A stretch of 64,000 bases of DNA from Octopus bimaculoides. Its lineage: Eukaryota. Positions 19,801 through 60,784 of this stretch are shown here, piece after piece. A program made the translations under genes and the position numbers. The notes under the pieces are model-generated. The model saw only the letters and a program-made list of their open reading frames with translations, had not been told where the DNA came from and made no database searches. Where the stretch lies: positions 41,168,814-41,232,813 of the forward strand of contig NC_068994.1 in assembly GCF_001194135.2 (NCBI RefSeq). The letters run 5' to 3'. Every line of letters starts with the position of its first letter. Positions within the stretch are counted from its first letter, which is position 1.

Positions 19801-22800
19801 ATAAAGAAGGGCAGCATCCAGACCCTATATTTTGGGGAAGAAAGGGAGTTATTTTTCTGGTCAGAGATCTAGTGTGAAGGTCTAAGTGAACGTATAGCAA
19901 AAGTTCCTTAGTTTGCATATCTTTGTAATGATGTCTTGTTGCTAGCCTCAGGCCAACCCAGTGGCATACTGTGGGTATAACATGGGTTTGGCTCCTCAAT
20001 AACAGATATCCAGTAATGAAGGAAACCAAAAAAGGGTGAAATCACATGATCTGGTAGTATACAAGAGGTTTTGTCAAGGTAAATAACACAGATTTCTGTT
20101 TCAGCAAAAACGTCCACATTACTGTGGAAATAAAGATTGCCTTTTGATATTAATACTGCTTCTGTCACTATTAATTATTTTTTAAAGTTATATACCTCAC
20201 ACATAAGGATTATAATTCACTCTAATGAAATAAGGATGAATCAAATAGTCAAGACAAATTTAACTATTTGTAAAACAACTTTTTGACATATACAAAACAG
20301 GTAATTTGAATAACTTCAACAAACCAAATGATAACCTAAATTTTTGTAACAAATATGCTGACATTTAATTTACTATTCATATTTTCAGAAAAAAACTTGA
20401 AAGAAAAATTTATCATAAGATTTTAATAAAATTTGAATGAACATATTAAAACAAGGCAGCATGATACGTTAGTAAACAGCCAAAGAGTGACTGGTAAAAA
20501 AATTCATATAATGCATTTTCAAATGGTGAAAGATAAGCTTGATATCATAATCTTTGACATTTATAGCAAACTAGATCAGAAGTGGGGCAAATAGAAACAA
20601 CATACATTCAATAAAAATTTTTAAATTTATTATTTCTATAAATACTTGAATGAAGAATGTATAAAATTTTCTCTCATGTCAGCAATATAAGTAGATGATT
20701 ATAAAAGTAGAAAATAACGCCAATGGATTGAAGTTTATGAAGAGATTCAACAAGATTTTTAAGCAATAACATGGCAGTTAGGAGTGAGGAAAGTTCAAAA
20801 CATACTGAAATATATAGGTTTTAATTAATTTTCTACTTGTTCTTTTTATTCATTTTTATCTCTCTACTTGAAAAGGATAAAATAAGTTTTTATGGTTTTA
20901 GAGATTTCATACCGATTTATATCTTTAAACGAAGAAGAGTTTAGTTGAAGTATTCTATGAAAGACTAGTTAACATCTTATCAACTACAAAAAAATTGTTA
21001 AAATCTTATTGAATTTATATTCTCTATTTGATTCATCATAGCTGTTGTAGATGTTAATAAACTAAAATATTAATGTCATGTCATGTGTTTCATGAGAATT
21101 TCTAAGTTCATGATATTAATTTAGAAGATCAGATCATTCTAGACCAAAAGAATTCTAGGAAAATCAGACTAGCCTGTTTAAGGGTCTCTGTTTTCTAGCA
21201 GAATATTTTATCAACCTTTGCAGCTTGATGATATCTAGAATTTGCAGTATCCTACATATATTTAAAGATATAATTGTAAGAGAGTTAAGCATCATTTCAA
21301 TAAGTGACTTTTTAAAGATAATATCTATATACTAATCTGATATATTGTGAGCATCGACCTGTAATAAATAAGCTCTGTAATCTCATGAGAAACATTTGCT
21401 TGATTTAATAGCTGAGAGACTGAGAGAGACATGGAAAGAGAGAGATAAAGAGAAGAGATAGATAGAGAGGGAGATAGAGAAGAGATAGATAGAGAGAGAG
21501 CAAGAAAGAGGGATAGGAAGAGAGAGACAGGGAGAGAGGGAGTCAGTTTTCATATGAAAAGACTTTGAAAAGAGAGGTACTTACTACATAAATCGAACAG
21601 AAAAAAAAAACTGTATGTGTGTGTATGTATATATGTATGTATAAATACATACATACATACAAATTAAGAACAACAACAAAATAATGTTTTTAGTTATGGG
21701 CAAATACAAAACAAATCAACAACCATAATCCAATCTAACTAAAAAAAAAAAAAAGAAACATTGATATAAGTAGGAGTCTAATGGCTATGTGGTCATTCCC
21801 ACCTGAGTAGCTACAAAAGAAGAAAGTCAATCTACTTTGGTAAATATTTTACTAGAGGAAACCAATTTCAGGAAAATTACTTTACATACCAGAGTAAATA
21901 GGATAAATAGGATTCTACCTGAATCATTAAACTTTTCTTCTTCCTCACAGCCAAATAATTTATTCCAATTTGTGAACTTTTTGTATTTACCATATTTGTC
22001 AATTCAGACTGCTTTCACTAGTTTTGGTGAATTCTACTGTTCCAGTGAGTTAACAAATAGGAGAGACCCTGGAAGCAAGTATATTTGCAGTGAGGAGTGA
22101 AAAAAATCTGTCATTTCAGACTTTTTGCCTTTCTTCTGAGAGCAATGTAAAAAGTAAGCAACAGAAAGTGAGAGGGAGAGAGAGAGAGGGCTGGTATTTT
22201 CACTCCTTACTAAAACTGAGTTTCTCAAACTCTTCTGCACTATTCTTTATGCCCCAACATGACTGCAGTCCAATGACTGAAACAAGTAAAAGTTAAATGA
22301 TACAGGCTAACTATTGTCAACACAGATCGTCAATCATTTCTTGATATTTTGGTAAAAAAAAGAAAAGAAATGGCAAAAATAGAATATAGTAGTCCACTAC
22401 TGGACATATTGCTCTTCATGACCGAAAACTTTTGATAATTCTACACACTCATTAATACTGACCAGAATCTGTCAGTCTTAATATTCATTTTGGTGACTGA
22501 GGAGATTGCAAATACACGAAGTGAAGGGCCTTATCCAAGAACACAACATGCCCTACAGACCTTTTGAACGAAAGCCCAGTAGTCCTGTCACTAGCCAAAC
22601 TTCCTTTTGGGATTTAGATTTTACTTTAAAAAGACTAAGTTTGAATTATTTTTCCAATAGTTTAGTCAGAGAAGGAGGTGAAGTATACATGAACCCTTTC
22701 CAGATCTTCTGTTACTGGGAAAAACAGAGAAGAAAGACTCTGCTACTAAAGTTGCACAAGGTTTTGATGTGAAGTCAAGCTATAGATTAAGTCTACCATC

Positions 22801-23088: not shown

Positions 23089-23315
23089 TTACACATTGAG
23101 GGAAGTTGATGGAAACATTTTCTGTGGTATTTCAGGTAGGGGCTTAGTGCAAAACATTGAACCAGATATTGGCTTTGAAGACAAATTAGAACTGCTACCA
23201 TATTCCATGTTGTCATTTGTTTCTCTGTACATAAAATTTTGATTCTCAATTGATTTACTCAAAGATTTGCAAGATGTTTTTCTATTCTGGTGTTTGATGG
23301 GAAACGCATAAATAT
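23089..23315 (-). CDS. PCDH: Protocadherin terminal coding exon 3 (cytoplasmic), 227 nt to stop
   Basis: Strong acceptor CTTTTTATTTCTTTTTCAG|. In phase 1 it reads (D)IYAFPIKHQNRKTSCKSLSKSIENQNFMYRETNDNMEYGSSSNLSSKPISGSMFCTKPLPEIPQKMFPSTSLNV-stop with no internal stop. The phase matches the exon 2 donor. AATAAA hexamers follow on the minus strand around 22841-22910. Confidence 0.8.
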
Positions 23316-23404
23316 CTGAAAAAGAAATAAAAAGCCACTGTAATTAATAAATTCAATGCCTGTTCATTAGTTCATGTTTTAAGATTTCATTCCAGCTAAC
23401 TCGT

Positions 23405-23975
23405 TACTTATCTTTTACTTTTAACTAGCTTCAGTCACAGAATTGCAACCATGCTGAGACACTATCTTGAAGGGGTTAGTTGAACAAATCGATCCCAGTC
23501 AATTTGTTCAACTTAATCTTTATTTTTTTAAGCCCGATACTTGTTCTGCAGGGTTTTTGTTTTTGCTGAACCACCAAGTTACAGGTTAAGAAGCTTGCTT
23601 TGCTACCATACGGTTCTAGGTTCAGTCCTGCTGTGTAACAACTTGAGCAAGTGTCTTCTGCTATAGCTCTGGGCTGACCAATGCTTTGTGAGAGAATTTG
23701 GTATGTAGGAACTGTGTGGAACCCCATCATGTGTGTGCGTGTGTGTTTTTGTGTATGTGGTTGTCCACTTTCAACCACCACAACCACTTGACAATTGTTA
23801 ATGGTTTGTTTTCAGCCCCTGTAACTTCGTAGCCCAACTAAAACGACTGTTAGAATAAGTACCAGACTTAAAAGAGATGTACTGGGGTGGGGGTGGGATC
23901 AATTAGTTTCATTAAACCCTTGAAGATAGTGCCCCAGCATGGCCACAGTCTAGTGACTGAAATTAGTAAAGAGAA
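23405..23975. mobile_element. Two family A SINE pieces in opposite orientation (intron 2)
   Basis: Minus-strand tail at ~23405-23585 abuts a plus-strand full copy at ~23585-23975. Confidence 0.7.
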
Positions 23976-24454
23976 AATGAATGAGAAAAGAAACCCTATT
24001 TGTTTCATGTATAATAGTATAATAAAATCTAATCCAGATTTACAGTCTGCTTAGAAGTAATTCTTTATTTTTCTCTTAATTCTGAGGATTATAAAACCTT
24101 GTTTTGAAATGGCTTAATCTGAAAACAATTTATATTCTGAATGTGATATTAATAAGAAAGAAATAATAGTACAGAATCAAATATTTAGGAATCTCTATGG
24201 ACAATAATATCATATGATAAAAAGATCAGAAAAAAATAAACAATATTTTCAATAATGTTATCATAATTAATGTAAGAATTGAAAATATGAGTAAAACTAT
24301 TTAGGTGGTGAGAAATTTTGGCAAACATGAAAGACAGCTTGCAACATATTTCAGTCATATTCTGGCCACATCAACAAAACCTTCTCCAAAATGATAATAA
24401 TAATAATAATAAGAAGAAGAAGAATAGTAATAATAATAATAAGTATCAAAGGCA

Positions 24455-24710
24455 GCAAGCTGGCAGAAATGTTAGCACACCAGGCGAAATGCTTAGTGGT
24501 ATTTTGTCCATCTTTGCAAGAAGGTGGTGAGCTGGCAGAAACATTAGCATGCTGGGTGAAATGCTTAGTGGTATTTCGTCTGTCTTTATGTTTTGAGTTC
24601 AAATTCTGCCGAGGTCAACAAAATAAGTACCAGTTGCATACTGGGGTTGATCTAATCGACTAGCCACCTCCCCCAAAATTTCGTGCCTTGTGCCTAGAGT
24701 AGAACAGAAG
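24455..24710 (+). mobile_element. SINE family B (GGCAGCAAGCTGGCAGAA... tRNA-like head), partly duplicated head
   Basis: GAGCTGGCAGAA..TTAGCA..GGG.GAAATGCTTAG.GGTATTTCGTC..GAGTTCAAATTC.GCCGAGGTC; the family also occurs near 25830, 37770, 38225, 41790, 49170 and 61480. Confidence 0.75.
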
Positions 24711-24734
24711 AATAAAATGTATCAGATGCCCTTC

Positions 24735-24965
24735 TTCAGCTACAGGGTCATAAGGCCAGTTTCCCAGATTCTGTGGCATAAGAACTCCTACAGATAAACA
24801 TGATGCCAGCCCATTGCTGGACTACTTATTTCTGATAGCTGAGTGGACTGAAGTGAGGTGAAATGAAGTGTCTTGCTCAAGAACACAATGCATCGCCTGG
24901 TCCAGGAATCGAAACCACAATCATACAATCATGGATGCAACACCCTAACCACTAAGCCACATACC
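24735..24965 (-). mobile_element. SINE family C, minus-strand copy (intron 2)
   Basis: Reverse complement reads TGGCTTAGTGGTTAGGGTGTTGCATCC...GTTTCGATTCCTGGACCAGG...GTGTTCTTGAGCAAGACAC. Confidence 0.8.
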
Positions 24966-26496
24966 TCTGCCATGTCAATGAAGGAATAATCATTAAATCT
25001 CTAAATAACTTCTAAGAAGTTTGGTTGAATTTTCCATATTAAATCCCCATTATAAACTTTGCTATATTGGCTTCTACCTACTGTAATATTTTCCAGCCTT
25101 ATTCTCCTTTATTCTCATGTAAATTAGGTATGGTTTCAAAATAATAACTGACATATAATTAGAAGTGTTAAATCATAAATATTTAGATGTTCATAGAATA
25201 ATATGTACCAAAACATCAATATTTAGTGGTAAGGCATCAATATTTTCACTTCAAAGAAAGACAGGATAGAAATGAAGAAGAAACTATATACAAGATGGTA
25301 TTAACATAATTAATGCAAGAAGAATTGAAAAGTAAAGTGACAAATTTTGGTAAATATAGAAGACAATTCGTGACATATTTCAACCTAGTTCTGACCTTAT
25401 TATCAAAGTAAGGCTTCTTTGTACTTGATGAATCGGTGAGGTAAAAATCTCTCTGTATGTGTATAAAATTGTACATTGGCTGGTGTAGTAAAACAGAATT
25501 GTTTAGAAAATCATTAATTCAGGGATGCTAGCTGCATGGAAAACAGTAGTCAATTTACTGCTAATAAATCTAATGCAAGGATTGTTGATGGTCTGTGTAA
25601 ATATTTACATCTGTGAAGCCATTGAATTGTTCTAACATATTTTAGTAAATCCTTGGGCAAGAAAATAACTTCTTTTTCTCTCTGGATGGCAAAAACATAT
25701 CTATGAGGATGAAGATATCAGTGGAATGACTTAAAAACAAATGCTTAAAAGCCCCATAGGAATCTATTAAATTATGCCAACTTAGGCAAAATGATATAAA
25801 ATAAGCGTTTTTCAGTTATAAAATATATCCTTTTTATTATCGGCACAAGGCCTGAAATTTTGTGGGAAGGGTTAATTGATTGTATTGACTCAAGTTCTTA
25901 GCTAATTTCATCAACCCTGAGAAATGAAAGGCTAAGTCAACCTTGGTGGCATTTGAACTCAGAACATAAAGATAGATGAAATGCCACTAAGCATTTTGTT
26001 AAATGCTTTAACAATTGATTTCAAATTTTGACACAGGCCTGCAATTTGCAGGGAGGGCTAAGATGATTATATCAACCCTGGTGCTCAACTGGTACGTATT
26101 TTATTGACCCTAAATGGATGAAAGGCTTGGTGATATTTGAACTCAAAATGTGATGACAGATGAAATGCTGCTAAGCATTTTGTTTGTGTTATTCTAAAGT
26201 AAACTCTAGATCATAATTGATTTCTTTTAATTGGAAATATTTCATAGATTTGAATACAGGCATGTGGTTTGAAGTTCACTTCACAACTGTATTGCAGAAC
26301 ATTTTTTTGTAGTTAAGTTGACTGAGCTATTTGGGAATTAAATGCTACTTGAGACAGCATATTAACTGCTAATTTCTTAGTTAATTGTTTGATACCCAGT
26401 CTACCCAGCCAACAATTCTCTTAAACTGAATCCATACTAACATTAGAAATGTCAAATAATAAATAAAAAAAAGCTAATAGTAATTCTATAACTTAC

Positions 26497-26662
26497 CAAG
26501 AAGTTCTTCATAGTGATTAGCATCTGCTTCAGTCCAGCCATGTCCAGTGTAATTACAGGAGGATACCTCTGACATTTCATTGTAATTTCCAAGAAATTCT
26601 GGCTTAAAAGAACTTTGTATTCTTGGCCCATCATATATTATGACCATATCATCAAGGAAGTT
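26497..26662 (-). CDS. PCDH: Protocadherin coding exon 2 (cytoplasmic), 166 nt, phase 0 to phase 1
   Basis: Acceptor TTTTGAAATTTATAG| and donor CTTG|GTAAGT. Open in phase 0 for all 55 codons: NFLDDMVIIYDGPRIQSSFKPEFLGNYNEMSEVSSCNYTGHGWTEADANHYEELL. The phase matches the exon 1 donor. Confidence 0.85.
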
Positions 26663-27245
26663 CTATAAATTTCAAAACAAGTTTTATTAAATTTCAAACT
26701 AGACGATTTAAAATCATTCACATCTAACAGAAAGAAAAAAAACTAACTCATTCAGATCTTAAATAATAACTAGGAGTAAGACATCACCAAATCAACGTAT
26801 AAGCATTGATGATAATTAGTTGCATTTACATTGTGAGATTGTGACATCAGATCTTAAGGTGTTGGGCTTTATGAAAAAGGCAAAGGGAAAAACCAAAACA
26901 AATGGCAATGTGTGATGAAGCAGATCTATCAAATACAAAAGAATGGAGTGGGGGAAACAAAACAAAAACATCAAAACACTGATGATGACAATAAACAACA
27001 ATGACAGCTATCAGAATTTGAGGTGGATTTTTTTGCAGTCAAACGTCTTTCCTGTCACCAACATATATTTGTGTGTGCGCGCATGTGTGTGTGCACGCAT
27101 GTGTGTGTGTATGTGATAAGGGGGCTGCTAGTTTATATCTTATCACATGTATTGGATTGTTTCCTTCAGAAAACCCTTTTAGGTGTTAGTGACTGCCCAT
27201 CATGCTGAGCTTTGTAAATCAAGATCAACTTGATCTAAGATCAGA

Positions 27246-27429
27246 GGTTCCATTCTCATTCCTATTTAACCCACAGTCCAGCTTAGTATTACACACACAC
27301 ACATATTTATATATATGTGTGTGTATGTAAGTATGTATGTATGTACATATATAAATGTATGTATGTATGTATATGTATATATGTAATATAAAGCTTAACT
27401 GTGGGTCAAATATGAATAAGAATGGAACC
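27246..27429. repeat. Inverted repeat (~48-bp arms) enclosing a microsatellite (intron 1)
   Basis: 27246-27293 vs the reverse complement of 27382-27429, about 7 mismatches. The spacer is (CA)/(TA)/(TATG)n. Confidence 0.8.
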
Positions 27430-29280
27430 CACAGAGAAGTTCTATGATACTTAAATTTATTTCAGTTCTGATTCATGTAATATATTTAATCTTTACTTGT
27501 TTCAGTCATTTTGTATGGCCATGCTGGGGCATCAGCCTCAGTACTTATTTATGTATTTATTTATGAATCAAAGTTCCACTGCAGTGGTGGTGGTGGTGGT
27601 GATGATGATGCAAGGGGCTGCTACACAGTTTTTGTCGACCAAGTTCCACTCAGAAAGTACAGGTTAACCCATAGCTATTGTAGAAGATACTCAAACAAAT
27701 TGCTGTGCAGTGAGATTGGACCCAGTAACCTGTTGCTGTGAAGCGAACATCTTAACCACACAGCCATATCTCTGCCTACAGTTTGTTCTTTGATCAAGCA
27801 CATTACCTTTACTCCTTATCAATCTCCTTCCAATGATGGTAATAATAATTATAACGATTGCGGTAGTTTGTAATATTAATACTTGTTCATAAAAAAATAA
27901 TACTCAAAAACATTTCAATAATATTTCTGTTAATGACAAAGACAGGAAAAAGATATAATACTTCTTAAGTTTGCATTTCTTTGATCTTTCTATATTATAA
28001 CCATGATGCAGTTTATTTCGTATGATCACAAATTGTATCTGAAATAGCTCATCATATTGTTTGTCCTCTTATGAAAAGAAAAAAGAAAAGCAAATCAGTC
28101 TTAAATATATTTCAAAGAAAATATAATACATTCCAATAATATTCCTGTAATTTTACAAAAGTATTTATCAATATTCTATGTATTACTGTCATTGAGATAT
28201 TCCTCCCCTCCACACTTCCAGAATTTTTTATATTTAAATGGTAATTAATTCTTAGCTTAACTATAATTCCTTGTCTTGCAAGATTTCAATTTTACAGTTG
28301 ATTAATCATTTTCATGCTGTTTTTTTTATCTTTATATATGTGTATGTACATATTTACATGTATGTAATAAAATAAATGTAGTATATACCAAATAATATTT
28401 GTATTTTGCAAACCAATCATGTCTTTCATTTATTTTACAAATGTGTCTATGTGCGTGTGTGTTTGTGTGTGCCGCCTGATTGGTTCCTGTGACAGTGGTA
28501 TGTATAAAGCACCATTCGAGTGTGGTCGATGCCAGTGTCAAGTGACTGGGCCCCGTGCCAGTGATACGTAAAAAGCACCCACTACACTCTGGGAGTGCTT
28601 GGCGTTAGGAAGGGCATTCAGCTGTAGAAACCTTGCCAAATCAGATTGGAGAGACAAAGAAATTCAGGGAGAGTTGATGATGTTTTTATTACAAGTAGTA
28701 GTGTTGATGGTGACAGTGAGAGTAATAATAAGAGAGTGAGAAAGAGTGGGTATGTGAGAGAAAGAGGAATTGAACACAATTCATTTACACACACATTTAG
28801 CTTTTTTGTGATTGAAATGGGGTGATAGTAATAATAGTTGTGATAGAGGCAGAGATGGCGGTGATGATGGTGGTGGTGGTGGTAGTGGTAGTAGCCGAGG
28901 CGGTCAGGGATGATGGTGAGAGTAAGTGATGTGAAAGACAGTGGTGGTGGTGGTAGAGGGGAAGGTAGCGAAGTCAAAGGTATTGATGGTGGTGGCGTCA
29001 GAAGCCTGAATGGTGTGTGTACAGCAGAGATGGTGGTGATGGTAGTTGTACTGCTGTTTATCATGCAACTTTACAATAACTTTCAAATCAACAAATTATA
29101 TCATTGTTTTGATGAAAATTGTTCATTGCTTGAAAAATATTGTTCAAGTTTAATAAAATTTAAGATGTACTCAATGCATGAAGAGTCATTGTTGGGCCCA
29201 AGGCCTAACGAAGAGCCCTCCACAGGAGCTAGCTTAAAAGCCACCTGATATATATACATATATATGCATATAGCGAAAGT

Positions 29281-29560
29281 GCTTCATGGCTTAGTGGTTA
29301 GGGTATAAGGTTCATGATCATGAGGTTGTGAGTTCAATTCCCACCAACACATTCTGTTCTTGAGCAAGACACTTTATTTCATATTGCTCCAGTCCACTCC
29401 ACTGGCAAACATGCATAGCACCTGTATTTCAAAGGGCCGGCCTTGTCATGCTGAATCTCCCTGAGAACTACATTAAGGATACACATGTCTGTGGAGTGCT
29501 TGGCCACTTGCCCATTTTCATTAGCAGGCTATTCCATTGATTGGATCAACTGGAACCCTC
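29281..29560 (+). mobile_element. SINE family C, plus-strand copy (intron 1)
   Basis: TGGCTTAGTGGTTAGGG...GTTCAATTCCC...GTTCTTGAGCAAGACAC...CAGTCCACTC. Confidence 0.8.
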
Positions 29561-30076
29561 ATCGTCAGAACTGGTAAATGAACATCACTTTTATACATGT
29601 GATGTTGTTCGTTTCTAGTCTTCCATGGAAAATATGTCTGATCATAGGAAGTATCAGCTGGAAGCAGGTGAGTGTTGGTGACAGGAAGGTCATCCAGAAA
29701 CAGAAAATTTGATTCAACAAACCCCATCTGACCCATGCAAGCATAGAAAAGTGGACGTTAAAATGACGAGGACGATGATAATATTTGTATATATCTGTAT
29801 CTATACTCTCACACACATACTTATATTTAGTGAACTCACTTGTCATAAATGATAGATGAAAGCTCTGCAACTTCTTGCTGAAACACCTGCACAGATGATT
29901 TGCTTATAGTGATTAAATGCTTGTGTTGTTTAATAGCTCACATGTTTGTTTCAAATTGACATTACCTGTAGAGGTGCATGATATGCTACATATCTGAAGG
30001 ATGTGGCCACAGAGCAATGTGAAATTAAGTTTTTTTGCATATGAGTGCAACAACTCCACCCACTAGGTCACACATC

Positions 30077-30108
<32 letters not shown>

Positions 30109-31205
30109 NNNNNNNNNNAATAATAATAAAAAGTAACAACAAAAGAATGAGACTTTGATATTAGATAAATATATGATTATTTATATATGTTATAATTTAG
30201 AACAAACAGTAAAAGGTTGTCATTATAATCTTTACTCGGAGTTTCGAATGTCGGAGCAAAGAGCTACGATACATTCTCACTGGCTATTAATGGCAACACA
30301 CTCCAATTTCATCTGGCAAGGTTTATACAGCTGGATGCCCTTCCTAATGCCAACCACTCAGAGAGTGTAGTGGGTGCTCTTTCACATGCCACTGGCACAG
30401 GTGCCAGTCAGGTAGTACTGGCATTGCCATTGATATATATGAAAGAGCATGACTTAAATTTATTCCAACCTTACTGGGTTTCCTAATATATAATATATAT
30501 GTACATAACTAATTTAGAGACGAACCACTACTCTACAACTCAGAACCCGTCCAAATCCATGCTGTAAGGCATATACCATCTTAATATATCTAAGATTTTA
30601 ATCTAAAAATTTAAATTAAATAACATATATAAATAAATCATAGAAATATTAATTTAAAAAATTTTTAAAGTCAAATTTATAAATTGGACAGTAAAAATTA
30701 ATACGATAACATACAGTATGGAAGTCTAAATGTAGAAAATTAGTGCTAGTACATAGACTATGCGCGTTTCATGACTGAAATAGGACTATATAAAATCATA
30801 ATCAAATTTTATCCGAGTTCATTAGAACGGGGAGATGATTTTACTCCCCAAATCAGACACTCTTCAGGTCAAATCCCTAAGAAAATACCTAAAATCATTC
30901 AGAGAATAAACATAAACATGAGAAATAAAAATATATATAAAGAGACAAAATCTGTAAACTAATCCCTACATTAACGGTATTAATATAATTATTAAGAGTT
31001 ACAATCTAAAAATATTATAGTATTATAGTAAACAAGGTTAAAACATTATGGAATAAGTAGATAATAGTAAAAAAAAATGTGTTAGTGTACAAAGTTACTA
31101 AAAGACGGATGTCAATATTGTTTATAAAATTAAAATACGAAAACATGATTTATCTGCCGGCTGGTGACTGTAGATTAAACCAACATGTGCTATAGAATTT
31201 ATACT

Positions 31206-31655
31206 AAAAGGTCACGTGATAAATATGGCGTATATTACCCAGAAGTACCTGCGTATTATAATTACTAAAATAATAACGAAAATATCGAATAAGAAAATCT
31301 ACCTAAAATAAAAAAGATTCTTGAGGATTAAAAATACTAAAATACTTAAACTTGCAAATTAACGCAGAGTAATAACTACTCACATACGAAAATTCTATAT
31401 TACGTAAATAATGCTATGAAAATAAATACTGAAAAGTCACGTGATAAATATGGCGTCCATTACCAGAGGCAAGTACGTGTTATAATTACTAAAATAATAA
31501 CGAAACTATCGAAAAAGAAAATCTACCTAAAATAAGAAGTTTAATGAAGATTAATAATACTAAAATACTTAAAACTCTCAGATTTACACAGAATAATAAC
31601 TATACCAAATATGAAAGTTATATATTACTTTAATAATGTTATGAAACATTTTAAA
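31206..31655. repeat. Two-copy tandem repeat, period ~225 bp
   Basis: GTCACGTGATAAATATGGCG at 31211 and 31436; the following ~200 bp align (TATAATTACTAAAATAATAACGAAA, AAGAAAATCTACCTAAAATAA, ATACTAAAATACTTAAA). Confidence 0.85.
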
Positions 31656-31959
31656 AGACTGCTTATATTATCGTTGAATACTTAAAGTAAAGGAAGTTAT
31701 ATGTTCCAATTTTGTATAATATTGTGATGATTAAAGTGTATTCTAACCCTAATTTGATGTCTTTTACGCTACTGATCATAACTATAAGTTGGTATTTAAT
31801 ACTAGGTTTAAATAAATAAATTAGTTATCTAAACTTATTATATAAGTAATTTAATTTATGTCTGCATTGAATATTACGTTTATCATGGGAGTTAAAGAAT
31901 TTGTTATTAGCTAATGATATCTCTTTAAATTCGTTAGTACATAATATATATATATATAT

Positions 31960-32165
31960 TTCAATATGTGACCGCGTGTGTATCGTTGGTAATTTTCTTT
32001 CTCCGTCTTCCCTTCTGTGGACGTTTTCTATATTTCTGATGAAGAGCCTTGCTCGAAAAAATCCTCTTTCTTTTCTTTCCTTTCCTGAGCGTTCAATAAC
32101 ACTGTACTTATTCCACGTCCTCGCGTTGTTGCTTTTTCTTGTTTGTTCATGTTTGGATTGACTAT
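31960..32165 (+). mobile_element. Penelope-type LTR/tail fragment with degenerate hammerhead-like core
   Basis: CTGATGA-A-GAGC-CTT-GCTC-GAAA at 32036-32058 within a CpG-retaining block. The family assignment is inferred from this motif. Confidence 0.55.
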
Positions 32166-32639
32166 ATGTATATATGCATATATATATATATATGTATATA
32201 TATATATGTGTGTGTGTGTATATGTTTGTGTGCCCGTGTTTATGCCCCCAACATTGCTTGACAACAAATGCTGGTGCATTCACTTCCCCATAACTTAGTG
32301 GTTCAGCTAATAAGTCCGATAGAATAAGTACTAGGCTTACAAAGAATAAGCTCTGGTGTCGATTTGTTTGACTAAAGGTGGTGCTCCAACATGGCCACAG
32401 TTAAATGACTGAAACAAGTAAAAGAATAAGAGAATAAATATATATATAGACACATGAGTGGCTGTGTGGTAAGTAGCTTGCTTACCAACTACATGGTCCC
32501 AGGTTCAGTCCCACTGTGTGGCACCTTGGGCGAGTGTACTAGGCTTACAAAGAATAAGTCGTGGAGTTGATTTAAATAAAAAGACGGTGCTCCAGCATGG
32601 CCACAGTCAAACGACTGAAACAAATAAAAAAATATAATG

Positions 32640-32943
32640 TGTACATTATTTACATTTGACGGATATTTGTCCTCATCTTGTTTGCTGTTAACACAATGTT
32701 TTGGCTGCCTTCATCAGGTGTCTTTGGGAAATTTCGAACCTGGGTTCTCATTCCTAAGGTATTTTTCGATGTTATTATTATTATTATTATTATTATTCAG
32801 GTCACTGTCTCAGAATCTTGGGGTTAGTAGTCGTGCTCTTAACTGCTATGCCATATGCCCGTAGTGATTAAGAGCATGGGCTACTAACCCCAAGATTCCG
32901 AGTTTGATTCCAGGCAGTGACCTGAATAATAATAATAATAATA

Positions 32944-32985
<42 letters not shown>

Positions 32986-33128
32986 TCGAAAAATACCTTA
33001 GGAATGAGAACCAAGGTTCGAAATTTCCCAAAGACACCTGATGAAGTTTGGAGGGTATATCAGCCGAAATGTTGTGTTAACAACAAACAAGATGAGGACA
33101 AATATCTGTCAAATGTAAATAATGTACA
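32640..33128. mobile_element. ~490-bp palindromic element: head-to-head tRNA-like heads, (AAT)n, hammerhead-like tails
   Basis: 32640-32860 is the reverse complement of 32870-33128 apart from microsatellite length and two small deletions in the left arm. Confidence 0.9.
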
Positions 33129-33800
33129 TAGTGTACATTATTTCTCATCTCTTAAATATAGAACTGTATAACGTGTCTTGTGTGAACAAAAGAGATGTAC
33201 AACTGCTACTGTTAAGTTTAGAGCTCTACATAGATTGTCATCCTCCAGTCTGCTTCCAGTAGTGTGGTTAAGTAAGTACTATGCTTAGTAGTATTACTAG
33301 TTATGATGTACATAGCGACTGTAGAAGAAATTACAATGAAATTGTTTGTATTGTTTGTTCCTACATACCTAAGAAAAATCTGTATAAACTTGTGTTTATC
33401 AAAATTTCTCATCTCTCTTTCGCTTTCTCTCTCTATCTCTCTTGATATATATATGTGTGTGTTCATATACTTATAGCCACATACATGTACATGCATTAAA
33501 TATGTATGTTAGTATGTGTATATATGCATATGTACACACACACACACACATATACATACACATGTATGTGTATATGTACGCAACATAATTAGATAGTACT
33601 ATAAGCTTTTCAAATAAAGCTTAATTCTATGTCCAAGATAATATCTGAAAATAATACCTTACTTGCAATATGACCACATTTTTTTTATTCCTTTTGCACA
33701 AAAGATATCTCAACTTATTCTTGAAACAATATAAGAATTCCTCAAGAAATAAATGCTATTAAATCTATATGAACAAAAACTAATCAAGAAAAACACTTAC

Positions 33801-36170
33801 TTGATGTTTCCATTCTGTTTGCATCTCACTATGTATTCTGGGAGTGGAACCTTTCCAGCTGTAGGCTAACTCATGCTGCTTGCAAGATTCTTGTTTTGAA
33901 TTAAAATCCTGTGAATATGAATCATTTGCTGCAGGTTGGTATAAATGTTCCTGTTGCTTCACCCCTTTAAGTGACTGTGATGAGGCATTTTTCCTCTGAT
34001 AACACAGAAAGTTTTTTTGTTGGTTAGTTCGTACAACACAAAGTGCTGTAATTACGACCATACTCACTGAGAGCGCAAGAGCCACAAATATCACAATTAG
34101 TACAAGATAGATGCGTACACTATGGGGCTCTTGCTGTAGAAACTTGCTTGAAAATGAAGAGGTAGCATTACTAACAGTCACTTTTAAAGATAAATTAGTC
34201 GATGTGGATAAAATAGGTGAGCCACTGTCTTTAGCAATGATTTGAAGGTGATACAATCCAGCATCTTTCTGGAATAGTTGTCGTGTAAAAGAGAGCACAC
34301 CAGAGTATTTGTCAAGCTGAAATAAATTCTTCTGATTACCTGCTGATATTTCATATTGAAGAAAGGCATTAATGTTAATATCATCATCCACAGCTCTGAG
34401 AACAGTTATGTTTCTGGATCCCCAAGAGTAAAAATAAACGTCCATAATAAAATTGGAGTGACGGGGGAAAATAAAGTAAGGAGTATTGTCATTTTGGTCC
34501 AAGACAGTTACAGTTGTATTTACAGTATTATTGAGAAATGGAATCCCATTATCTTTCACAAGTATTTGAAAATTATATTCTTCTTCTTCTTCTCGGTCTA
34601 AAGCATCTGTCGTTGAAATAAAACCAAAGTCAGAAATTTCAAAAGGCAGACGTACTCCCTTCTTTGATATCAAGAAATAGGACAATTGCCCTCCTGGGCC
34701 TAAATCTAAGTCATTTGCACTGACAAGTCCAATGGGGAAATTTGGCTTCTGATTTTCATGCACGGAAAATTTAAATTCATCTTTAGAAAATTGTGGTCTC
34801 ACATCATTGATGTCTTCTAGTTCTATAATAACTGACTTGTTTGTCTCTAAAGGAGGCGTTCCATGATCTCTACAAGAAATGGTGAAATTGACACTGACTT
34901 CCAGTTCTCGATCTATTGCTTCTTTGATAATCACTTTATATTTATTTGAACCTAAACTCACAAGTTCAAATTTCTTAGCTCTGAGATTACAATAAACTTC
35001 TCCATTTTTACCAGCATCATCATCTGTAATTTTAACAAATGCAATAAAGCTTCCAATTTCAATCGCTTCAGAAATATATACCTTTTCTTCCTTTTCTTTT
35101 GAGATGAAATTTATATCTATTTTTGGCGCCTTGTTTTGTTGGTTTATAATGTTTACCAGCATCAGTGCTATGGAACTAAGAGGTGGGTTACCTTGATCTG
35201 TAGCTTTGATGAAAAGCTTGCATGACTGGTTCAATTTAGAATTGAAATTTTCTGTGAAGAAAAGTTGACCTGTTTTTTCATTCAATTGAAAAAAAGATCT
35301 ATTTATCATTGAAGTTTTTGTACTGAAGTGGTAGGAAATTTTCCCATTGTCTCCAGAATCTTGATCAATAGCTGACAATGTGGCTATTGGTTTGCTCCAC
35401 TGATGCTTATATATAACAGTTATATTGTATACATTGTGAACAAAAGATGGGACATTGTCATTAATATCTTCCACTGTTATCAAAATTTCTAACTGGCTTT
35501 TCTGTGATGGAAATCCACTATCTTCTGCAATAATTTGAATTTTATATGAATCATTTTTCTCTCGATCAATTCTTTCTTTCAGTTTTATACCAAGAGTTGA
35601 TGTGCTATCTACATTTTCAGAAACTGTGAGTTCAAATGGATCACCTTCATGTTTTAGAAGTTTGTAATTAATCTGAGAGTTCAAAGTACCCACATCTTTG
35701 TCCACTGCATTGGGTATGTGTTTAGTGATGCCTTTCCCATCACCTTCAGAGAACTGAAGTAAAATTTGGTCCTTTAGGAACTCAGGCTTATGATCATTCA
35801 CATCACTTATTATAACTTTTATTTCTAATATCTTAATAAATGATTGTTGGAACCTCACTGCAACAACAATTATTCTAGAACATTCTTTATCATATTCACA
35901 AAGAATTTCTGCATCCAAAGGTTGAATGGCATAAAGTTTACCTGTTTGGGTGACATTGAACAGATGGGAATTTGCATTACCACCCTGTTGTAATTGGCTA
36001 AACCAAATCAATTTGTGCCTGTTTGAAAGGATTCCCTTTACAGACTGGATATCAGTGGCTACATCTCCCAGATACGTAATTGGATTATTCGTCTCCTTAA
36101 CATGGTAGATAAGATCAATGCACAATGTTGTGCATACAGCTGAGAGGATTAGAAATACTTGCTTTTGCAT
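33801..36170 (-). CDS. PCDH: Protocadherin, coding exon 1 (signal peptide, EC1-EC6, TM, start of cytoplasmic tail); family-level name only
   Basis: ORF 33780-36170 has an N-terminal hydrophobic signal. Cadherin motifs are DVNDHKPEF, IDRE, DINDNVPSF, DINDVRPQF, LDRE, DQNDNTPYF and several A-x-D-x-G-x-P-type motifs. EC1 has the LDAEILC...C cysteine pair, and the TM is aa ~687-713. The whole ectodomain plus TM lies in one exon, which is typical of protocadherins. The exon ends after codon 790 at CAA|GTAAGT (phase 0, intron starts at 33800). Confidence 0.97.
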
Positions 36171-41126: not shown

Positions 41127-41413
41127 NNNNNNNNNNNNNNNNNNNNNNNNNNNNNNNNNNNNNNNNNNNNNNNNNNNNNNNNNNNNNNNNNNNNNNNNNN
41201 NNNNNNNNNNNNNNNNNNNNNNNNNNNNNNNNNNNNNNNNNNNNNNNNNNNNNNNNNNNNNNNNNNNNNNNNNNNNNNNNNNNNNNNNNNNNNNNNNNNN
41301 NNNNNNNNNNNNNNNNNNNNNNNNNNNNNNNNNNNNNNNNNNNNNNNNNNNNNNNNNNNNNNNNNNNNNNNNNNNNNNNNNNNNNNNNNNNNNNNNNNNN
41401 NNNNNNNNNNNNN

Positions 41414-46035: not shown

Positions 46036-47049
46036 CGTGTGTGTGTGTGTGTGTATGTGTGTGTGTGCATGTGTGCATAATTATACATATATATGTGTAT
46101 ATTTTATTTTCTCTGTTTATTTCCTCATATTCCTTTCTGTTGAAGAGCGTAGGCTCAAAACATATAAGACTTACTCACTTTCGTGTGTTAAACTAATACA
46201 CCTGCTTGTTGTTCATACNNNNNNNNNNNNNNNNNNNNNNNNNNNNNNNNNNNNNNNNNNNNNNNNNNNNNNNNNNNNNNNNNNNNNNNNNNNNNNNNNN
46301 NNNNNNNNNNNNNNNNNNNNNNNNNNNNNNNNNNNNNNNNNNNNNNNNNNNNNNNNNNNNNNNNNNNNNNNNNNNNNNNNNNNNNNNNNNNNNNNNNNNN
46401 NNNNNNNNNNNNNNNNNNNNNNNNNNNNNNNNNNNNNNNNNNNNNNNNNNNNNNNNNNNNNNNNNNNNNNNNNNNNNNNNNNNNNNNNNNNNNNNNNNNN
46501 NNNNNNNNNNNNNNNNNNNNNNNNNNNNNNNNNNNNNNNNNNNNNNNNNNNNNNNNNNNNNNNNNNNNNNNNNNNNNNNNNACAAATATAAAATATTAAA
46601 AATGATATTAATATTTCCGAATATTAAACAAAATCAAAATTACTATAACCACGTATTATTTGAAGTTGGATTTAAAGATAAAATTTGCTATATCCAGAAT
46701 TAAAAGAACAATAAAATTCCTGGAAATGATAGAATATTAGATAAGCTGGAACTTGATAGGGAGTATGATAAAAATAGAAATATAGATAGAAGTAAATGCA
46801 TTAAGCAATCTTTTTTTTAAACTAGACTAAATTAAAACAAGAAGGTAATGATACAAGTGTGATAGTTGAAAAACCAAGTATTGAAGATGAACATATTAAA
46901 AAGTATAGATCTAACTCAGTAGATACTGAATATACGGTTGATATTAATAATAATAATAATGATAATAATAATAATATTCCAAGATTAAAGTTACTCTTCA
47001 CGAAGGTAAAGAAACAAGAAGAGCGCGACTGTTATTGGTAATAAATAGA

Positions 47050-47720: not shown

Positions 47721-48098
47721 AACTGGAAATATTTCACATGTTCACTTCAAATTTCACTAATTTTGAATTGCCTTGATATCATAGTGTTAACATACATTTT
47801 TGGAAATATTAATATTAATTACAATAATATTTTATATGTGTGTGTGTATGTATGTATATGTATATATATATATATATCAACACAAGTTTATTATTCTTGA
47901 ATTTGTTTTGCCTGNNNNNNNNNNNNNNNNNNNNNNNNNNNNNNNNNNNNNNNNNNNNNNNNNNNNNNNNNNNNNNNNNNNNNNNNNNNNNNNNNNNNNN
48001 NNNNNNNNNNNNNNNNNNNNNNNNNNNNNNNNNNNNNNNNNNNNNNNNNNNNNNNNNNNNNNNNNNNNNNNNNNNNNNNNNNNNNNNNNNNNNNNNNN

Positions 48099-49607: not shown

Positions 49608-50556
49608 CTTCAAAACATGTAATACATGATGTTATAACACAGTTTCAGTTTTATTGAATGCTAACATGGATTAATTAGATCTACAAATTCTACTTTCAAA
49701 CCAATACCTGTAGAAAAAAAGTCATATGAGTATATAGTAAACTATTGTTTGAAATAACAGGTAAATTTTTCACGGAAACAATTTTATCTGAGAAGCTCTA
49801 ATCATTGAAATCTGTTGAAATCTATTCTGCTAGACAATACTAACTACTGTTAAATAGATATGAAAATCAATGCTACATATTTAAAAACAAAATAGGAAAT
49901 AAAGTTTTCAAACAGCTAAAAGTCTTATTTTGGCACATTTATCTAAATACTGAACATACTATAATATTATTAATGCGTCATTTTATTTTTTTTTTTCTCC
50001 CAAAGAGTTAACTTCTAATCCAATTTCTGTATGTCCCTCGAGGCAAACTACATTTGAGATCTCAATCTGAAAGGCATTGCAGACAGAGAAGATGAAATGC
50101 AGTAGATAAGGAAACTTGAGCTTTTAAAAGGTAACTTTATTCCAAATGAGGCAATGGAGATTTTGAAAAGAAAAGAAAAAAAAATAGATAACTGTTTTTG
50201 GTATTGTTTAACAGAGTGTAATTTGATTAAAGATTATAATATATAAATATNNNNNNNNNNNNNNNNNNNNNNNNNNNNNNNNNNNNNNNNNNNNNNNNNN
50301 NNNNNNNNNNNNNNNNNNNNNNNNNNNNNNNNNNNNNNNNNNNNNNNNNNNNNNNNNNNNNNNNNNNNNNNNNNNNNNNNNNNNNNNNNNNNNNNNNNNN
50401 NNNNNNNNNNNNNNNNNNNNNNNNNNNNNNNNNNNNNNNNNNNNNNNNNNNNNNNNNNNNNNNNNNNNNNNNNNNNNNNATATATATATATATATATATA
50501 CATATGTATACATATATATTATATATATATACATACACATACACACATGCACACAC

Positions 50557-58285: not shown

Positions 58286-60784
58286 GATTCTTGACCTGCA
58301 TAACAATGTCTCACAAAGGAGACAGCAAACATCAAGGGTTCCTTATTGGGAGATGGTGGGTATTTAGAAGAGTGAGTCATCAAGTTTGCAGAGCAAGTGT
58401 TTTCTACGATAGCCTAGGACCAACCAAAGCCTTGTGAGTAGATGTGGCAGTAGATGGAAACTGGAAGAAGCCCATTGTATGTATATTGCAAGGTTGGATT
58501 TGCAACAGTGAGTAGTTGCTGTAGCAGAAGCATGTGTAGGTCATTATAATATGCTGTATATAACTATCAAACTCTTTATTATTAATACTTATATATATAT
58601 ATATATATNNNNNNNNNNNNNNNNNNNNNNNNNNNNNNNNNNNNNNNNNNNNNNNNNNNNNNNNNNNNNNNNNNNNNNNNNNNNNNNNNNNNNNNNNNNN
58701 NNNNNNNNNNNNNNNNNNNNNNNNNNNNNNNNNNNNNNNNNNNNNNNNNNNNNNNNNNNNNNNNNNNNNNNNNNNNNNNNNNNNNNNNNNNNNNNNNNNN
58801 NNNNNNNNNNNNNNNNNNNNNNNNNNNNNNNNNNNNNNNNNNNNNNNNNNNNNNNNNNNNNNNNNNNNNNNNNNNNNNNNNNNNNNNNNNNNNNNNNNNN
58901 NNNNNNNNNNNNNNNNNNNNNNNNNNNACCACAATTTGACAACCGGTATTGGTTTATTTATATCCCTGTAACTAGCAGTTCAGCAGAAGAGACTAATAAA
59001 ATGAGTAGCACGCTCACAAGAATAAGTAACTGAATCAATGTTCTCGACTAAACCCTTCAAGTCAGTGCCCCACCATGGCTATGTTCCCATGACTGAAACA
59101 AGGAAATGATAAAAGGATAACAGAAAAAAAAAAACAGGTACATGCTTCTCTTTTGAACACAATTTCAAAACATCTTTGTTCGGATTAAAATATGAATAAG
59201 TCATTATGTGATCAGTGAGCAGATGCAGAACTGATGATGTGCCAAGATCCAATAAAATTTATAATAAAAATGTTCCGCTATAGTAAATCCTATGCAAAAA
59301 GAAAAAAAAAAAACATTCTAGATGGGTTCCTCAAACACATCCAGCATCTGCCCTTTTTATGATAAAAACTTCTGATTAAAAATTATTCTATTTTTGCTTA
59401 TTCTTTTATTTGTTTTTGCAACCAAGTGGTGTGGATGTTTGTAAAATGCAATTCAAATAAAAAGACGATACTGAGCCACAAAAGAATAATATTCCTGTAA
59501 ATTGTCAACCTAATATTTTTGTTCAATACAACATGATTTGCTGTAGCAAACATGGAAATCATCGTCGTCATCATTATCATCATTATCAACATTATTGTCA
59601 TTGTTGCCGTCGTCGTCATCATCATTATCATCATCATCATCATTATTCTCCTCATCGTCATGTAATCTTTTCTATGCTTACATGGGCCAGAGAGAATTTA
59701 TTTAGGTAGATTTTTGTGCACTCAGAAGCCTTTCCTGTTACTAACCCTCACCTGTTTCCAGACATGTTTCTGCAGGACATTGGAAATGAATGACATTCAC
59801 TTAGCAAAAGGTTTGTATATAAAACTGTAATAGTATGTTATAATTCTTAAACTTTGAAACAAGATGTGTTTCATATGATATGAGATGAAGCGATCTCAAG
59901 TGGGTTAGTATTGAAAGTGTTAAATATTTATTCAACAGAGGCTGTACAATGTACAACATTCAACTTAAAATCTATAACATAACGTACAGTATAATGTAAA
60001 GTTACTATAAAAAACAAACTACAGCAGACAGTGTGCAAAAGACAATTTTGAACAAGCTATAACTCGATAGAAAATTGAGTGCTTTTCAGAGTCAAATTCT
60101 TATATAATCACTTTGAAAAAAATTGTTTAGGAAAAAATAACATTTATTTATTTATTTATTCCTCTCATATTACAGACTCCATATGTATTCTTTGATTAAA
60201 TTTTACTTCCAGAATTTTAAAAGTAATCCAAATTATGGCAAAACTAAATGTAAAAATGATGTTTGGAAGTAATCATATTGCATTGCATTTTATGATAAAA
60301 AAATAACAAGAACAATATTTATGTACATGCAAACATGCATATAAATTTTACATACACTTATCAATATACAACTTTGCAAACTCATATATACTGTATACAT
60401 ACATACATAAAAATAGATAATTTCTTTGAGATGGAAATTATAACTTCCACCATTATGGCAACAAACAACAATAATAATTTAGCTTCAATTCCTTAGCTAT
60501 AGAATCTAATTCTATAGAAGTCCTCTTCTAAAACATTATGGTCCACTTGCTATGGATGTTTTATTAAAACAATGAGTTCAATAAAAGGCCTTTTGTTTTG
60601 TTTGAAAATGTATGAGGAATGCCTTACCATATTTCACTGAATAAGTAACTCAAGGATTTTACTCCCTGTTTCCTTCCTCTGCTACTCTCTCTTTAGTCTC
60701 TTTCTCGATATATGTATGCATATTGCATGTGTGTATATGCGTGTGTGTGTGTGAATGTATGCATAAATATATATGCATGTACAC

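Follow-up and report, generated by a model that had tools for sequence, protein, structure and literature searches.

The cytoplasmic tails of octopod protocadherins carry a real and conserved set of short linear motifs, of which YEE[I/L] and KPLPxΦP are the two most conserved elements. The gene examined here lies on the minus strand of a 64,000-nucleotide stretch of Octopus bimaculoides DNA (contig NC_068994.1, positions 41,168,814 to 41,232,813; hereafter the window) and is a whole protocadherin gene of three exons, including the exon 2 and exon 3 sequences that encode the motif-bearing tail. A first-pass annotation of the window had proposed that this tail could dock and activate a Src/Abl-type kinase through paired SH2 and SH3 sites. 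We find that reading partly supported and hold it with moderate confidence: matches to the SH2 and SH3 ligand consensus sequences, and their conservation, argue for it, but its Abl/Crk leg is not kept in paralogues and the pairing of the two sites is found in long-tailed family members only. Phosphorylation of the tail, the identity of its binding partner and activation of a kinase are discussed throughout as predictions from sequence.

The candidate pYEE[I/L]-type SH2 ligand of the window gene is YEEL (Y841–L844; 26512..26501, minus strand, as for all features of the gene), located on the cytoplasmic side, 128 residues past the transmembrane segment. From the tyrosine to the +3 position it has the Tyr-Glu-Glu-[Ile/Leu/Val] sequence of the Src-family SH2 ligand class, for which pYEEI is the optimum (best-binding) sequence (PMC7337045), and it also has the Y-x-x-[LIMFV] sequence of a tyrosine-based sorting signal (YxxΦ). 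KPLPEIP (residues 903–909; 23145..23125) has the basic residue followed by xΦPxΦP that typifies class I SH3 ligands, the RPLPPLP sequence of the Src SH3 ligand VSL12 providing the comparison (PMC4140816). Between the two lies IYAFP (Y848; 23313..23299), an Abl-substrate or Crk-SH2-like YxxP motif specific to the gene's orthologue group. The three motifs span 69 amino acids, in good agreement with the figure of about 70 given in the first-pass annotation, whose readings of the exon 2/3 junction, of the motifs and of the SLNV C-terminus are likewise correct, the spliced protein matching RefSeq. A second [ILV]YxxP motif, IYDGP (Y800; 26638..26624), absent from that earlier list, is found at the start of exon 2 within the sequence DDMVIIYDGPR and is identical from Octopus to Argonauta.

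Taken singly, such patterns are unremarkable. In 100,000 shuffles of the 130 amino acid tail, Y[DE][DE][ILVM] occurs in 1.9% of sequences, [ILV]YxxP in 6.2% and [RK]xxPxxP in 3.4%; all three occur jointly in 0.004%, and the strict pattern [RK]P[LIV]Px[LIV]P does not occur at all. With single patterns present in 2–6% of shuffled tails, and with such motifs common proteome-wide, the matches might be no more than functionless coincidences of short degenerate patterns in a low-complexity tail, a caveat that the first-pass annotation itself had raised. Conservation is a stronger test than shuffling, however, and for YEE[I/L] and KPLPxΦP the caveat is contradicted by conservation across the family, invariance among orthologues, change at synonymous positions only and top rank in an unbiased enrichment scan. 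Chance is in our judgement the least credible of the explanations considered here.

Evidence for family-wide conservation comes from one full-length protein search, which returned 120 cephalopod protocadherins. This search was the source of the family data because searches with the tail alone were nearly empty: whether word-indexed, by exhaustive phmmer or with a profile of the exon 2 block, they retrieved the O. sinensis orthologue and one extra match (P0121), which was rejected as a low-complexity repeat protein. Around 60% of the 120 matches are single-exon read-through predictions of ~800–830 amino acids that have no spliced tail and are therefore uninformative on motifs. In nearly all octopod protocadherins with a spliced tail, HYEE[I/L]P closes exon 2, standing at the end of a block with fixed spacing and the consensus T[LM]SS..DSGHGW[ST]E[GA]D..HYEE[IL]P[GA] that lies directly ahead of the exon 2/3 junction. 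In an anchored alignment of 30 non-redundant tails, the tyrosine is found in 27, glutamate at both +1 and +2 in 26, isoleucine, leucine or valine at +3 in 29 and proline at +4 in 20, with information content peaking at W-8 and from the tyrosine through to +5. D-13, G-11, H-10 and W-8 are also conserved. The corresponding sequence of the window gene is SEVSSCNYTGHGWTEADANHYEELL (26498..26572), so placed that YEEL is not a stand-alone motif but the end of a block of ~25 residues seen across the family.

A k-mer scan of 35 non-redundant tails against shuffled sequences points to the same elements. YEE.P was found in 12 tails (0.05 expected), YEEI in 11 (0.04 expected) and KPLP in 11 (0.08 expected), these three being top-ranked in the scan; WNLP was found in eight (0.01 expected) and YD.P in 12 (0.77 expected). 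Shared descent inflates these enrichment figures, but the remainder of the tail has diverged almost beyond alignment and the contrast with the motifs is therefore real. It is also apparent when relatives are compared in pairs. Nine pairs were compared, eight of them Octopus–Argonauta orthologues and the ninth more distant. All 36 YEEx positions are identical (Fisher p = 3e-5), as are 27 of the 28 in KPLPxxP (Fisher p = 3e-3), against 74.5% identity at tail positions outside the two motifs.

The exon that carries the block is itself homologous between family members. The same three-exon structure, with a phase-1 junction immediately after YEE[I/L]-x, is found in O. sinensis and Argonauta hians, and the O. 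bimaculoides paralogue P0009 ends its exon 2 with TAT GAG GAA TTA CCA G/gtatgt, as P0120 does with TAT GAA GAA ATT CCA A/gtatgt. That the exon and the intron phase are shared in this way shows common descent, not chance.

Comparison of coding sequences shows that selection acts on the protein, synonymous changes having occurred without amino acid change. Exon 2 differs from that of O. sinensis at two of 166 nt, both of them synonymous, and exon 3 at 12 of 227 nt, where all five of the resulting amino acid changes fall between the motifs; alignable intron sequence is 82–90% identical. Between Octopus and Argonauta the third position has changed in six of the seven codons of KPLPEIP, and the amino acids have not. 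The leucine codons of YEELL are variable (CTT, CTC, TTA) and Glu-Glu is encoded by GAG-GAA in one paralogue. These observations bear on an explanation at the RNA level, according to which a purine-rich GAAGAA splicing enhancer, together with the 5' splice-site consensus, would constrain a small exon lying between long introns. YEEL is indeed only 4–15 nt from the donor and its Glu-Glu codons read GAAGAA. Position +5 holds G, A or D, whose codons all begin with the G that is the last exon nucleotide before GT, and the proline and alanine codons at +4 (CCA, GCA) fit the CAG/GT donor consensus. We accept this explanation for +5 and partly for +4, conserved because of the splice-donor consensus, and reject it for Y-E-E-[I/L], where the variation in synonymous codons, already apparent in the few loci examined, rules out a pure splicing-enhancer account. 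The tyrosine and the Ile/Leu would in any case be left unexplained by it, the Argonauta orthologue keeps the motif with introns of ~260–290 nt, and KPLPEIP, with its changed third positions, is far from the junctions. Constraint at the RNA level is accordingly a very improbable source of the motifs, and both it and chance can be regarded as nearly excluded.

When the motifs named in the first-pass annotation were checked for conservation against background, YEE[I/L] and KPLPxΦP stood well above it and IYAFP was kept among orthologues only. The orthologues of the window gene itself are those of O. sinensis, O. vulgaris and A. hians, in all of which IYAFP and IYDGP are identical. Outside the motifs the Octopus and Argonauta tails are 55% identical, and the orthologue alignment has three conserved islands, which coincide exactly with DDMVIIYDGPR, EANHYEELLDIYAFP.KHQ and SKPLPEIPQKMF. 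Neither YxxP motif is found at these positions in paralogues, which have P-G/A-x in the place of IYAFP, although some YxxP occurs elsewhere in 34 of 51 family tails. The Abl/Crk leg of the original proposal thus appears, on alignment, to be confined to direct orthologues, and for IYAFP taken alone a chance origin followed by retention in one lineage is possible. A p85-type YNEM motif was also considered and discarded, as it is not conserved (YNDL in Argonauta).

The distribution of KPLPxΦP differs from that of YEE[I/L]. KPLPx[I/V/L]P is present in 14 of 15 long-tail proteins, 11–18 residues from the C-terminus, with KSLPSAP in the fifteenth, and many paralogue models stop at or shortly past YEEIP. 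As far as these protein models go, only the long-tail subgroup combines an SH2 site and an SH3 site. In a neighbour-joining tree of ectodomains, the rooting of which is uncertain, the KPLP long-tail lineages, including the window gene, form early, paraphyletic branches and the genes with YEEI only form a large derived group, which points to a long, KPLP-bearing tail as the older condition.

The tails were also examined for motifs and families already known from protocadherins and other membrane proteins. The exon 2–3 tail has no Pfam match to Protocadherin, Cadherin_tail, Cadherin_C_2 or Cadherin_C; the best that can be said of Cadherin_C_2 is a score of 16.2 bits on the juxtamembrane part encoded by exon 1, below the cut-off of 31.5, and no cadherin-tail Pfam family was matched by eight paralogue tails at E values up to 5. 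The WAVE-interacting receptor sequence (WIRS; Φ-x-[ST]-F-x-x) is absent from the window tail and present in three of 51 family tails, and the protein phosphatase 1 (PP1)-binding RVxF motif ([RK][VI]xF) is similarly absent from the window tail and present in one of 51. A WIRS-like reading of NSFTSY, ahead of KPLP, was rejected as the F-3 residue is R or K, not hydrophobic. Patterns for the immunoreceptor tyrosine-based inhibitory motif, NPxY and di-leucine are not found in the window tail and are rare among the 51. These results fit published reports that octopus protocadherins, those of O. vulgaris among them, have none of the vertebrate conserved motifs (CM) (PMC6339937), and they bear out the absence of CM1 and CM2 noted at first pass. 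The published list of octopus-specific motifs comprises EC1, EC5, EC6, TM and PP1 (EC, extracellular cadherin repeat; TM, transmembrane) and includes neither YEE[I/L] nor KPLP (PMC6339937). A literature search that did not extend to Albertin 2015 (with its supplement) or Wang & Ragsdale 2017 found no paper linking YEEI or SH2 domains with protocadherins or cephalopods, and the conserved tail module appears to be undescribed.

What might such a module do? In the model that we favour, Y841 within HYEEL would become phosphorylated once the protocadherin engages, creating a site at which a Src-family-type kinase, or a similar SH2 protein, could dock by its SH2 domain; in long-tail members the SH3 domain of this protein, or of a partner, would bind KPLPx[I/V/L]P. 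The kinase would in this way be brought to the adhesion site and held open there, much as by the tandem Src docking sites of FAK, and in the orthologue group of the window gene IYDGP and IYAFP may supply additional Abl-, Crk- or Nck-type inputs. Simultaneous constraint on the tyrosine and the +1, +2 and +3 positions fits best with a partner whose SH2 domain is of the Src-family type. RPLPPLP-type peptides bind and activate Src, Fyn, Lyn and Hck via their SH3 domains, FAK has tandem SH3 and SH2 sites with which it activates Src (PMC4140816), and the vertebrate Pcdh-α tail has been reported to interact with Fyn (cited in PMC6339937). We would put the likelihood that SH2 docking at pY841, with a C-terminal SH3 contact in long-tail members, recruits and opens a Src-type kinase or SH2/SH3 adaptor at a little below even.

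A number of points weigh against this model. The tyrosine has been lost in a few members (replaced by C in P0017 and by S in P0038), P0041 has no recognisable motif at all, and cuttlefish relatives keep the S[ED]DGWS[ED]/GWSE half of the block but have DY[ILV]EP in place of YEE[I/L]. KPLP is missing from most paralogue models, so that the SH2/SH3 pair is not universal, and the conservation of +5, and partly of +4, is an effect of the splice donor and not of protein function. The residue at -1 is mostly H or Q, where Src-family kinases prefer a large aliphatic residue in their substrates, and another kinase may be needed to phosphorylate the site. The spacing and order of the two docking sites are variable: the SH3 site follows the tyrosine at a distance of 62–140 residues, when in FAK and p130Cas it closely precedes it. 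The preference of SH2 domains for pYEEI is itself modest, roughly 100-fold at most relative to unrelated phosphopeptides (PMC7337045). Finally, YEE[I/L] fits a YxxΦ adaptor-sorting signal equally well.

This last point leads to a different view of the block, in which YEE[I/L] is a sorting or endocytosis signal read in its unphosphorylated form by clathrin-adaptor mu subunits, thereby setting the level of the protein at the cell surface, and KPLPxΦP is an unrelated SH3 or proline-recognition site. YEEL and YEEI fit YxxΦ exactly, at least one YxxΦ is found in 49 of 51 spliced tails, and the motif is located in a (predicted) unfolded cytoplasmic tail of a membrane protein, as a sorting signal would be; cytoplasmic domains are moreover known to control surface delivery of vertebrate clustered protocadherins. 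Mu subunits, however, read mainly Y and Φ, and a near-invariant glutamate at both x positions across deeply diverged paralogues is not what a plain sorting signal would lead one to expect. Acidic x residues are not favoured by AP-2 mu2, nor does this view account for the conserved class I SH3 motif. We consider it the chief rival of our model, though unlikely as it stands. A mixed version, in which phosphorylation toggles a single tyrosine between adaptor and SH2 binding, is possible and would make the two readings compatible. Such a tyrosine switch has been described for L1CAM (YRSLE) and CTLA-4 (YVKM), in which YxxΦ binds AP-2 when unphosphorylated and phosphorylation by Src-family kinases switches the protein to signalling or retention; those motifs differ from that of octopus in lacking acidic x positions, and the octopus switch is a candidate only.

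The length of the conserved block raises the further prospect that it binds some other partner altogether, such as an Atg8/LC3-type protein through an LC3-interacting region (LIR), a phospho-degron reader through DSGxx(x)S in its upstream half, or a novel cephalopod-specific protein, any resemblance to SH2 and SH3 ligands being incidental. The block is longer than an SH2 site, with D-13, G-11, H-10 and W-8 also conserved, D[ST]G is followed after 2–3 residues by [ST] in 11 of 51 tails, YEE[IL] behind an acidic stretch fits the LIR core [W/F/Y]xx[L/I/V], and cuttlefish have the GWSE half without YEE[IL]. Against this, the window gene and its orthologue in Argonauta have only degenerate versions of the DSG part (NYTGHGW and DHTEHDW) beside an invariant YEELL, and the putative LIR and degron readings leave KPLPxΦP unexplained. 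We judge a partner of this kind to be decidedly unlikely.

The kinase-docking model has parallels in several known systems. The tail of the hyper-diverse neuronal self-recognition receptor Dscam1 of Drosophila binds the SH2/SH3 adaptor Dock and has PxxP and YxxP motifs; Dscam1 differs in belonging to the Ig superfamily, in having adaptor-type YxxP rather than YEE[I/L] and in being supported by experiment. In FAK, as also in p130Cas and Sin, a class I-type proline motif and pY-x-x-[I/V] within one unfolded segment can jointly contact the SH3 and SH2 domains of a Src-family kinase and open it (PMC4140816). The octopus tail differs in that the tyrosine comes first, with the proline motif 62–140 residues later, in that the motifs are carried by an adhesion receptor instead of a cytoplasmic scaffold, and in that docking is here predicted from sequence. 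The vertebrate clustered protocadherin-α (CNR) proteins are similarly a large neuron-enriched family encoded by a big ectodomain exon and small tail exons, and they too are linked to non-receptor tyrosine kinases, the α tail by its reported interaction with Fyn and the α and γ constant regions by regulation of Pyk2 and FAK (PMC6339937, PMC7339444). There is no sequence similarity between these tails and that of octopus, which matches none of Pfam Cadherin_tail, Cadherin_C_2 and Protocadherin and has no WIRS, and the tail exons of the octopus gene are private copies, those of the vertebrate clustered genes being shared constant exons. In δ-protocadherins, CM1, CM2 and CM3 (the PP1-binding RVxF) and WIRS are, like the octopus motifs, short conserved cytoplasmic sequences that define subfamilies and couple to effectors, but no such motif is present in the window tail.

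A broader proposal can be put forward on this basis: that the output of all octopod protocadherins passes through a single phosphotyrosine switch, HYEE[I/L]P, placed where their homologous exon 2 ends and, in the older long-tail lineages, paired with a class I SH3 ligand to recruit and open a Src-family kinase. The octopod protocadherin expansion is independent of that of the vertebrate clustered protocadherins, and such a switch would be convergent with the link of the vertebrate constant regions to Fyn, Pyk2 and FAK, using unrelated sequence that is copied gene by gene instead of being shared by splicing. In this general form we regard the proposal as possible but doubtful.

The gene itself is known and its structure exact: the spliced 920 amino acid product is identical, residue by residue, to RefSeq XP_014785610.1 (UniProt A0A0L8FYW5), annotated as 'putative protocadherin beta-18' of O. 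bimaculoides, and the gene model is therefore one already annotated. Exon 1 (36170..33801), identified from an open reading frame (ORF) of 796 amino acids with a Pfam Cadherin match (E=2.3e-69), has 790 codons for the signal peptide, cadherin repeats, one transmembrane segment (residues 685–713; 34118..34032) and ~77 juxtamembrane cytoplasmic residues, and ends in a consensus phase 0 donor, CAA/GTAAGT. Exon 2 (26662..26497; 166 nt, or 55 codons plus one nucleotide) runs from the acceptor tttatag/AAC to the phase 1 donor G/GTAAGT. It reads NFLDDMVIIYDGPR...NYTGHGWTEADANHYEELL plus one further G, the reading NFLDDMVIIYDGPRIQSSFKPEFLGNYNEMSEVSSCNYTGHGWTEADANHYEELL being followed by the single G ahead of GTAAGT; it holds the block that ends HYEELL and closes with ...GHGWTEADANHYEELL. 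After an intron of 3181 nt (23316..26496), exon 3 opens at the acceptor tttttcag/AT, where (G)AT completes an Asp codon across the junction. Its coding part (23315..23089; 75 codons plus the TAA stop at 23091..23089) reads D and then IYAFPIKHQ...SMFCTKPLPEIPQKMFPSTSLNV before the stop, with ...FCTKPLPEIPQKMFPSTSLNV ahead of TAA, the order being IYAFP, KPLPEIP and a C-terminal SLNV. No fold is predicted for the tail (mean predicted local distance difference test score of 29 in a single-sequence AlphaFold2 model, which is weak evidence) and a PDB sequence search with it gave no match; the exon 2 and 3 tail is probably an unfolded cytoplasmic region that functions through short linear motifs.

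Other short sequences were seen at the two ends of the cytoplasmic region. The protein ends with -SLNV in Octopus (23092–23103) and with -SYDV in Argonauta; in each case Val stands at 0 and the -2 position is hydrophobic, in the manner of a class II PDZ ligand, a feature found only in the orthologue group of the window gene. Near the membrane, in sequence encoded by exon 1, Y[DN][IVM]P[VF] and [ST]WKGS..G.QL are common to many paralogues (P0006, P0009, P0014, P0015, P0017 and others), where the window gene has only LYQPA and YSWKGS. In the cuttlefish Acanthosepion pharaonis, the last 230 amino acids of P0054 contain four SDY[VL]EP...SG..TYSQP repeats, a different repeated tyrosine motif that takes the place of YEE[I/L].

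Some paralogue tails, seen in P0076, P0070, P0074 and P0120 and at L004 (12883–13045), stop just past YEEIP with endings such as YEEIPSM, YEEIPR and YEEIAGML. Because the annotated P0120 protein is a read-through of the phase-1 donor into a stop, these short tails may be unfinished models or retained-intron isoforms.

Vertebrate-style sharing of tail exons is not evident here. The 64-kb window is free of further cadherin exons and has the tail exons in a single copy, the orthologues have the same private three-exon structure, and the variable/constant exon organisation of clustered protocadherins is not seen for this gene. Shared constant exons were also considered, and rejected, for paralogue groups of Argonauta and O. 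sinensis with near-identical tails. These are recent tandem duplicates (P0034, P0035, P0042, P0043, P0044 and P0060 of A. hians; P0032, P0050 and P0051 of O. sinensis), with ectodomains 92–94% identical and the last 110 residues 98–100% identical, not all of them being identical; tails have diverged more slowly than ectodomains in these duplicates. The P0037 gene of O. bimaculoides (CM046614.1) has an annotated range of 112 kb for a product of 855 amino acids, so a big exon is there joined to very distant tail exons. This joining possibly spans other protocadherin genes, and would then resemble the vertebrate variable/constant layout.

The octopus gene (23089–36170) is about four times longer than its Argonauta orthologue (L002, 2001–5397) by virtue of repeat-rich introns, those of the window gene measuring 7138 and 3181 nt against ~260 and ~290 nt in A. 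hians. Intron 2 is without coding signal, and Rfam and tRNA scans of 20–38 kb were empty, revealing no RNA gene within it. Where it can be aligned with O. sinensis it is ~90% identical. One interspersed repeat is represented in it by four or more copies or fragments, lying in both orientations (24449–24615, 25940–26000 and 26126–26184 among them), and this element is multi-copy at the O. sinensis locus too. Downstream of the gene, a 90-nt segment (21147–21236) is single-copy in the window; its O. sinensis counterpart (L001, 27461–29084) is a tandem array of at least 13 copies with a period of ~125 bp. The window also has nine assembly gaps, seen as runs of N, mostly within TA/CA microsatellites, in regions that include 41127–41413, 46219–46581, 47915–48098, 50251–50479 and 58609–58927. 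The other window ORFs of more than 150 amino acids are all artefacts of these repeats.

Octopus has around 160–170 protocadherins, and on the signalling of their tails published surveys go no further than to report the absence of vertebrate motifs (PMC6339937). A short module kept throughout the family, and with an obvious biochemical interpretation as either SH2/SH3 docking or phosphorylation-gated sorting, opens the way to simple experiments. That a Src-type kinase docks on these tails becomes a definite proposal for protocadherin signalling, and one that can be tested. It also provides a marker for annotation, in that a complete exon 2 ends with YEE[I/L]P and one nucleotide before GT. More broadly, it offers a test of whether two independent protocadherin expansions have converged on coupling to tyrosine kinases.

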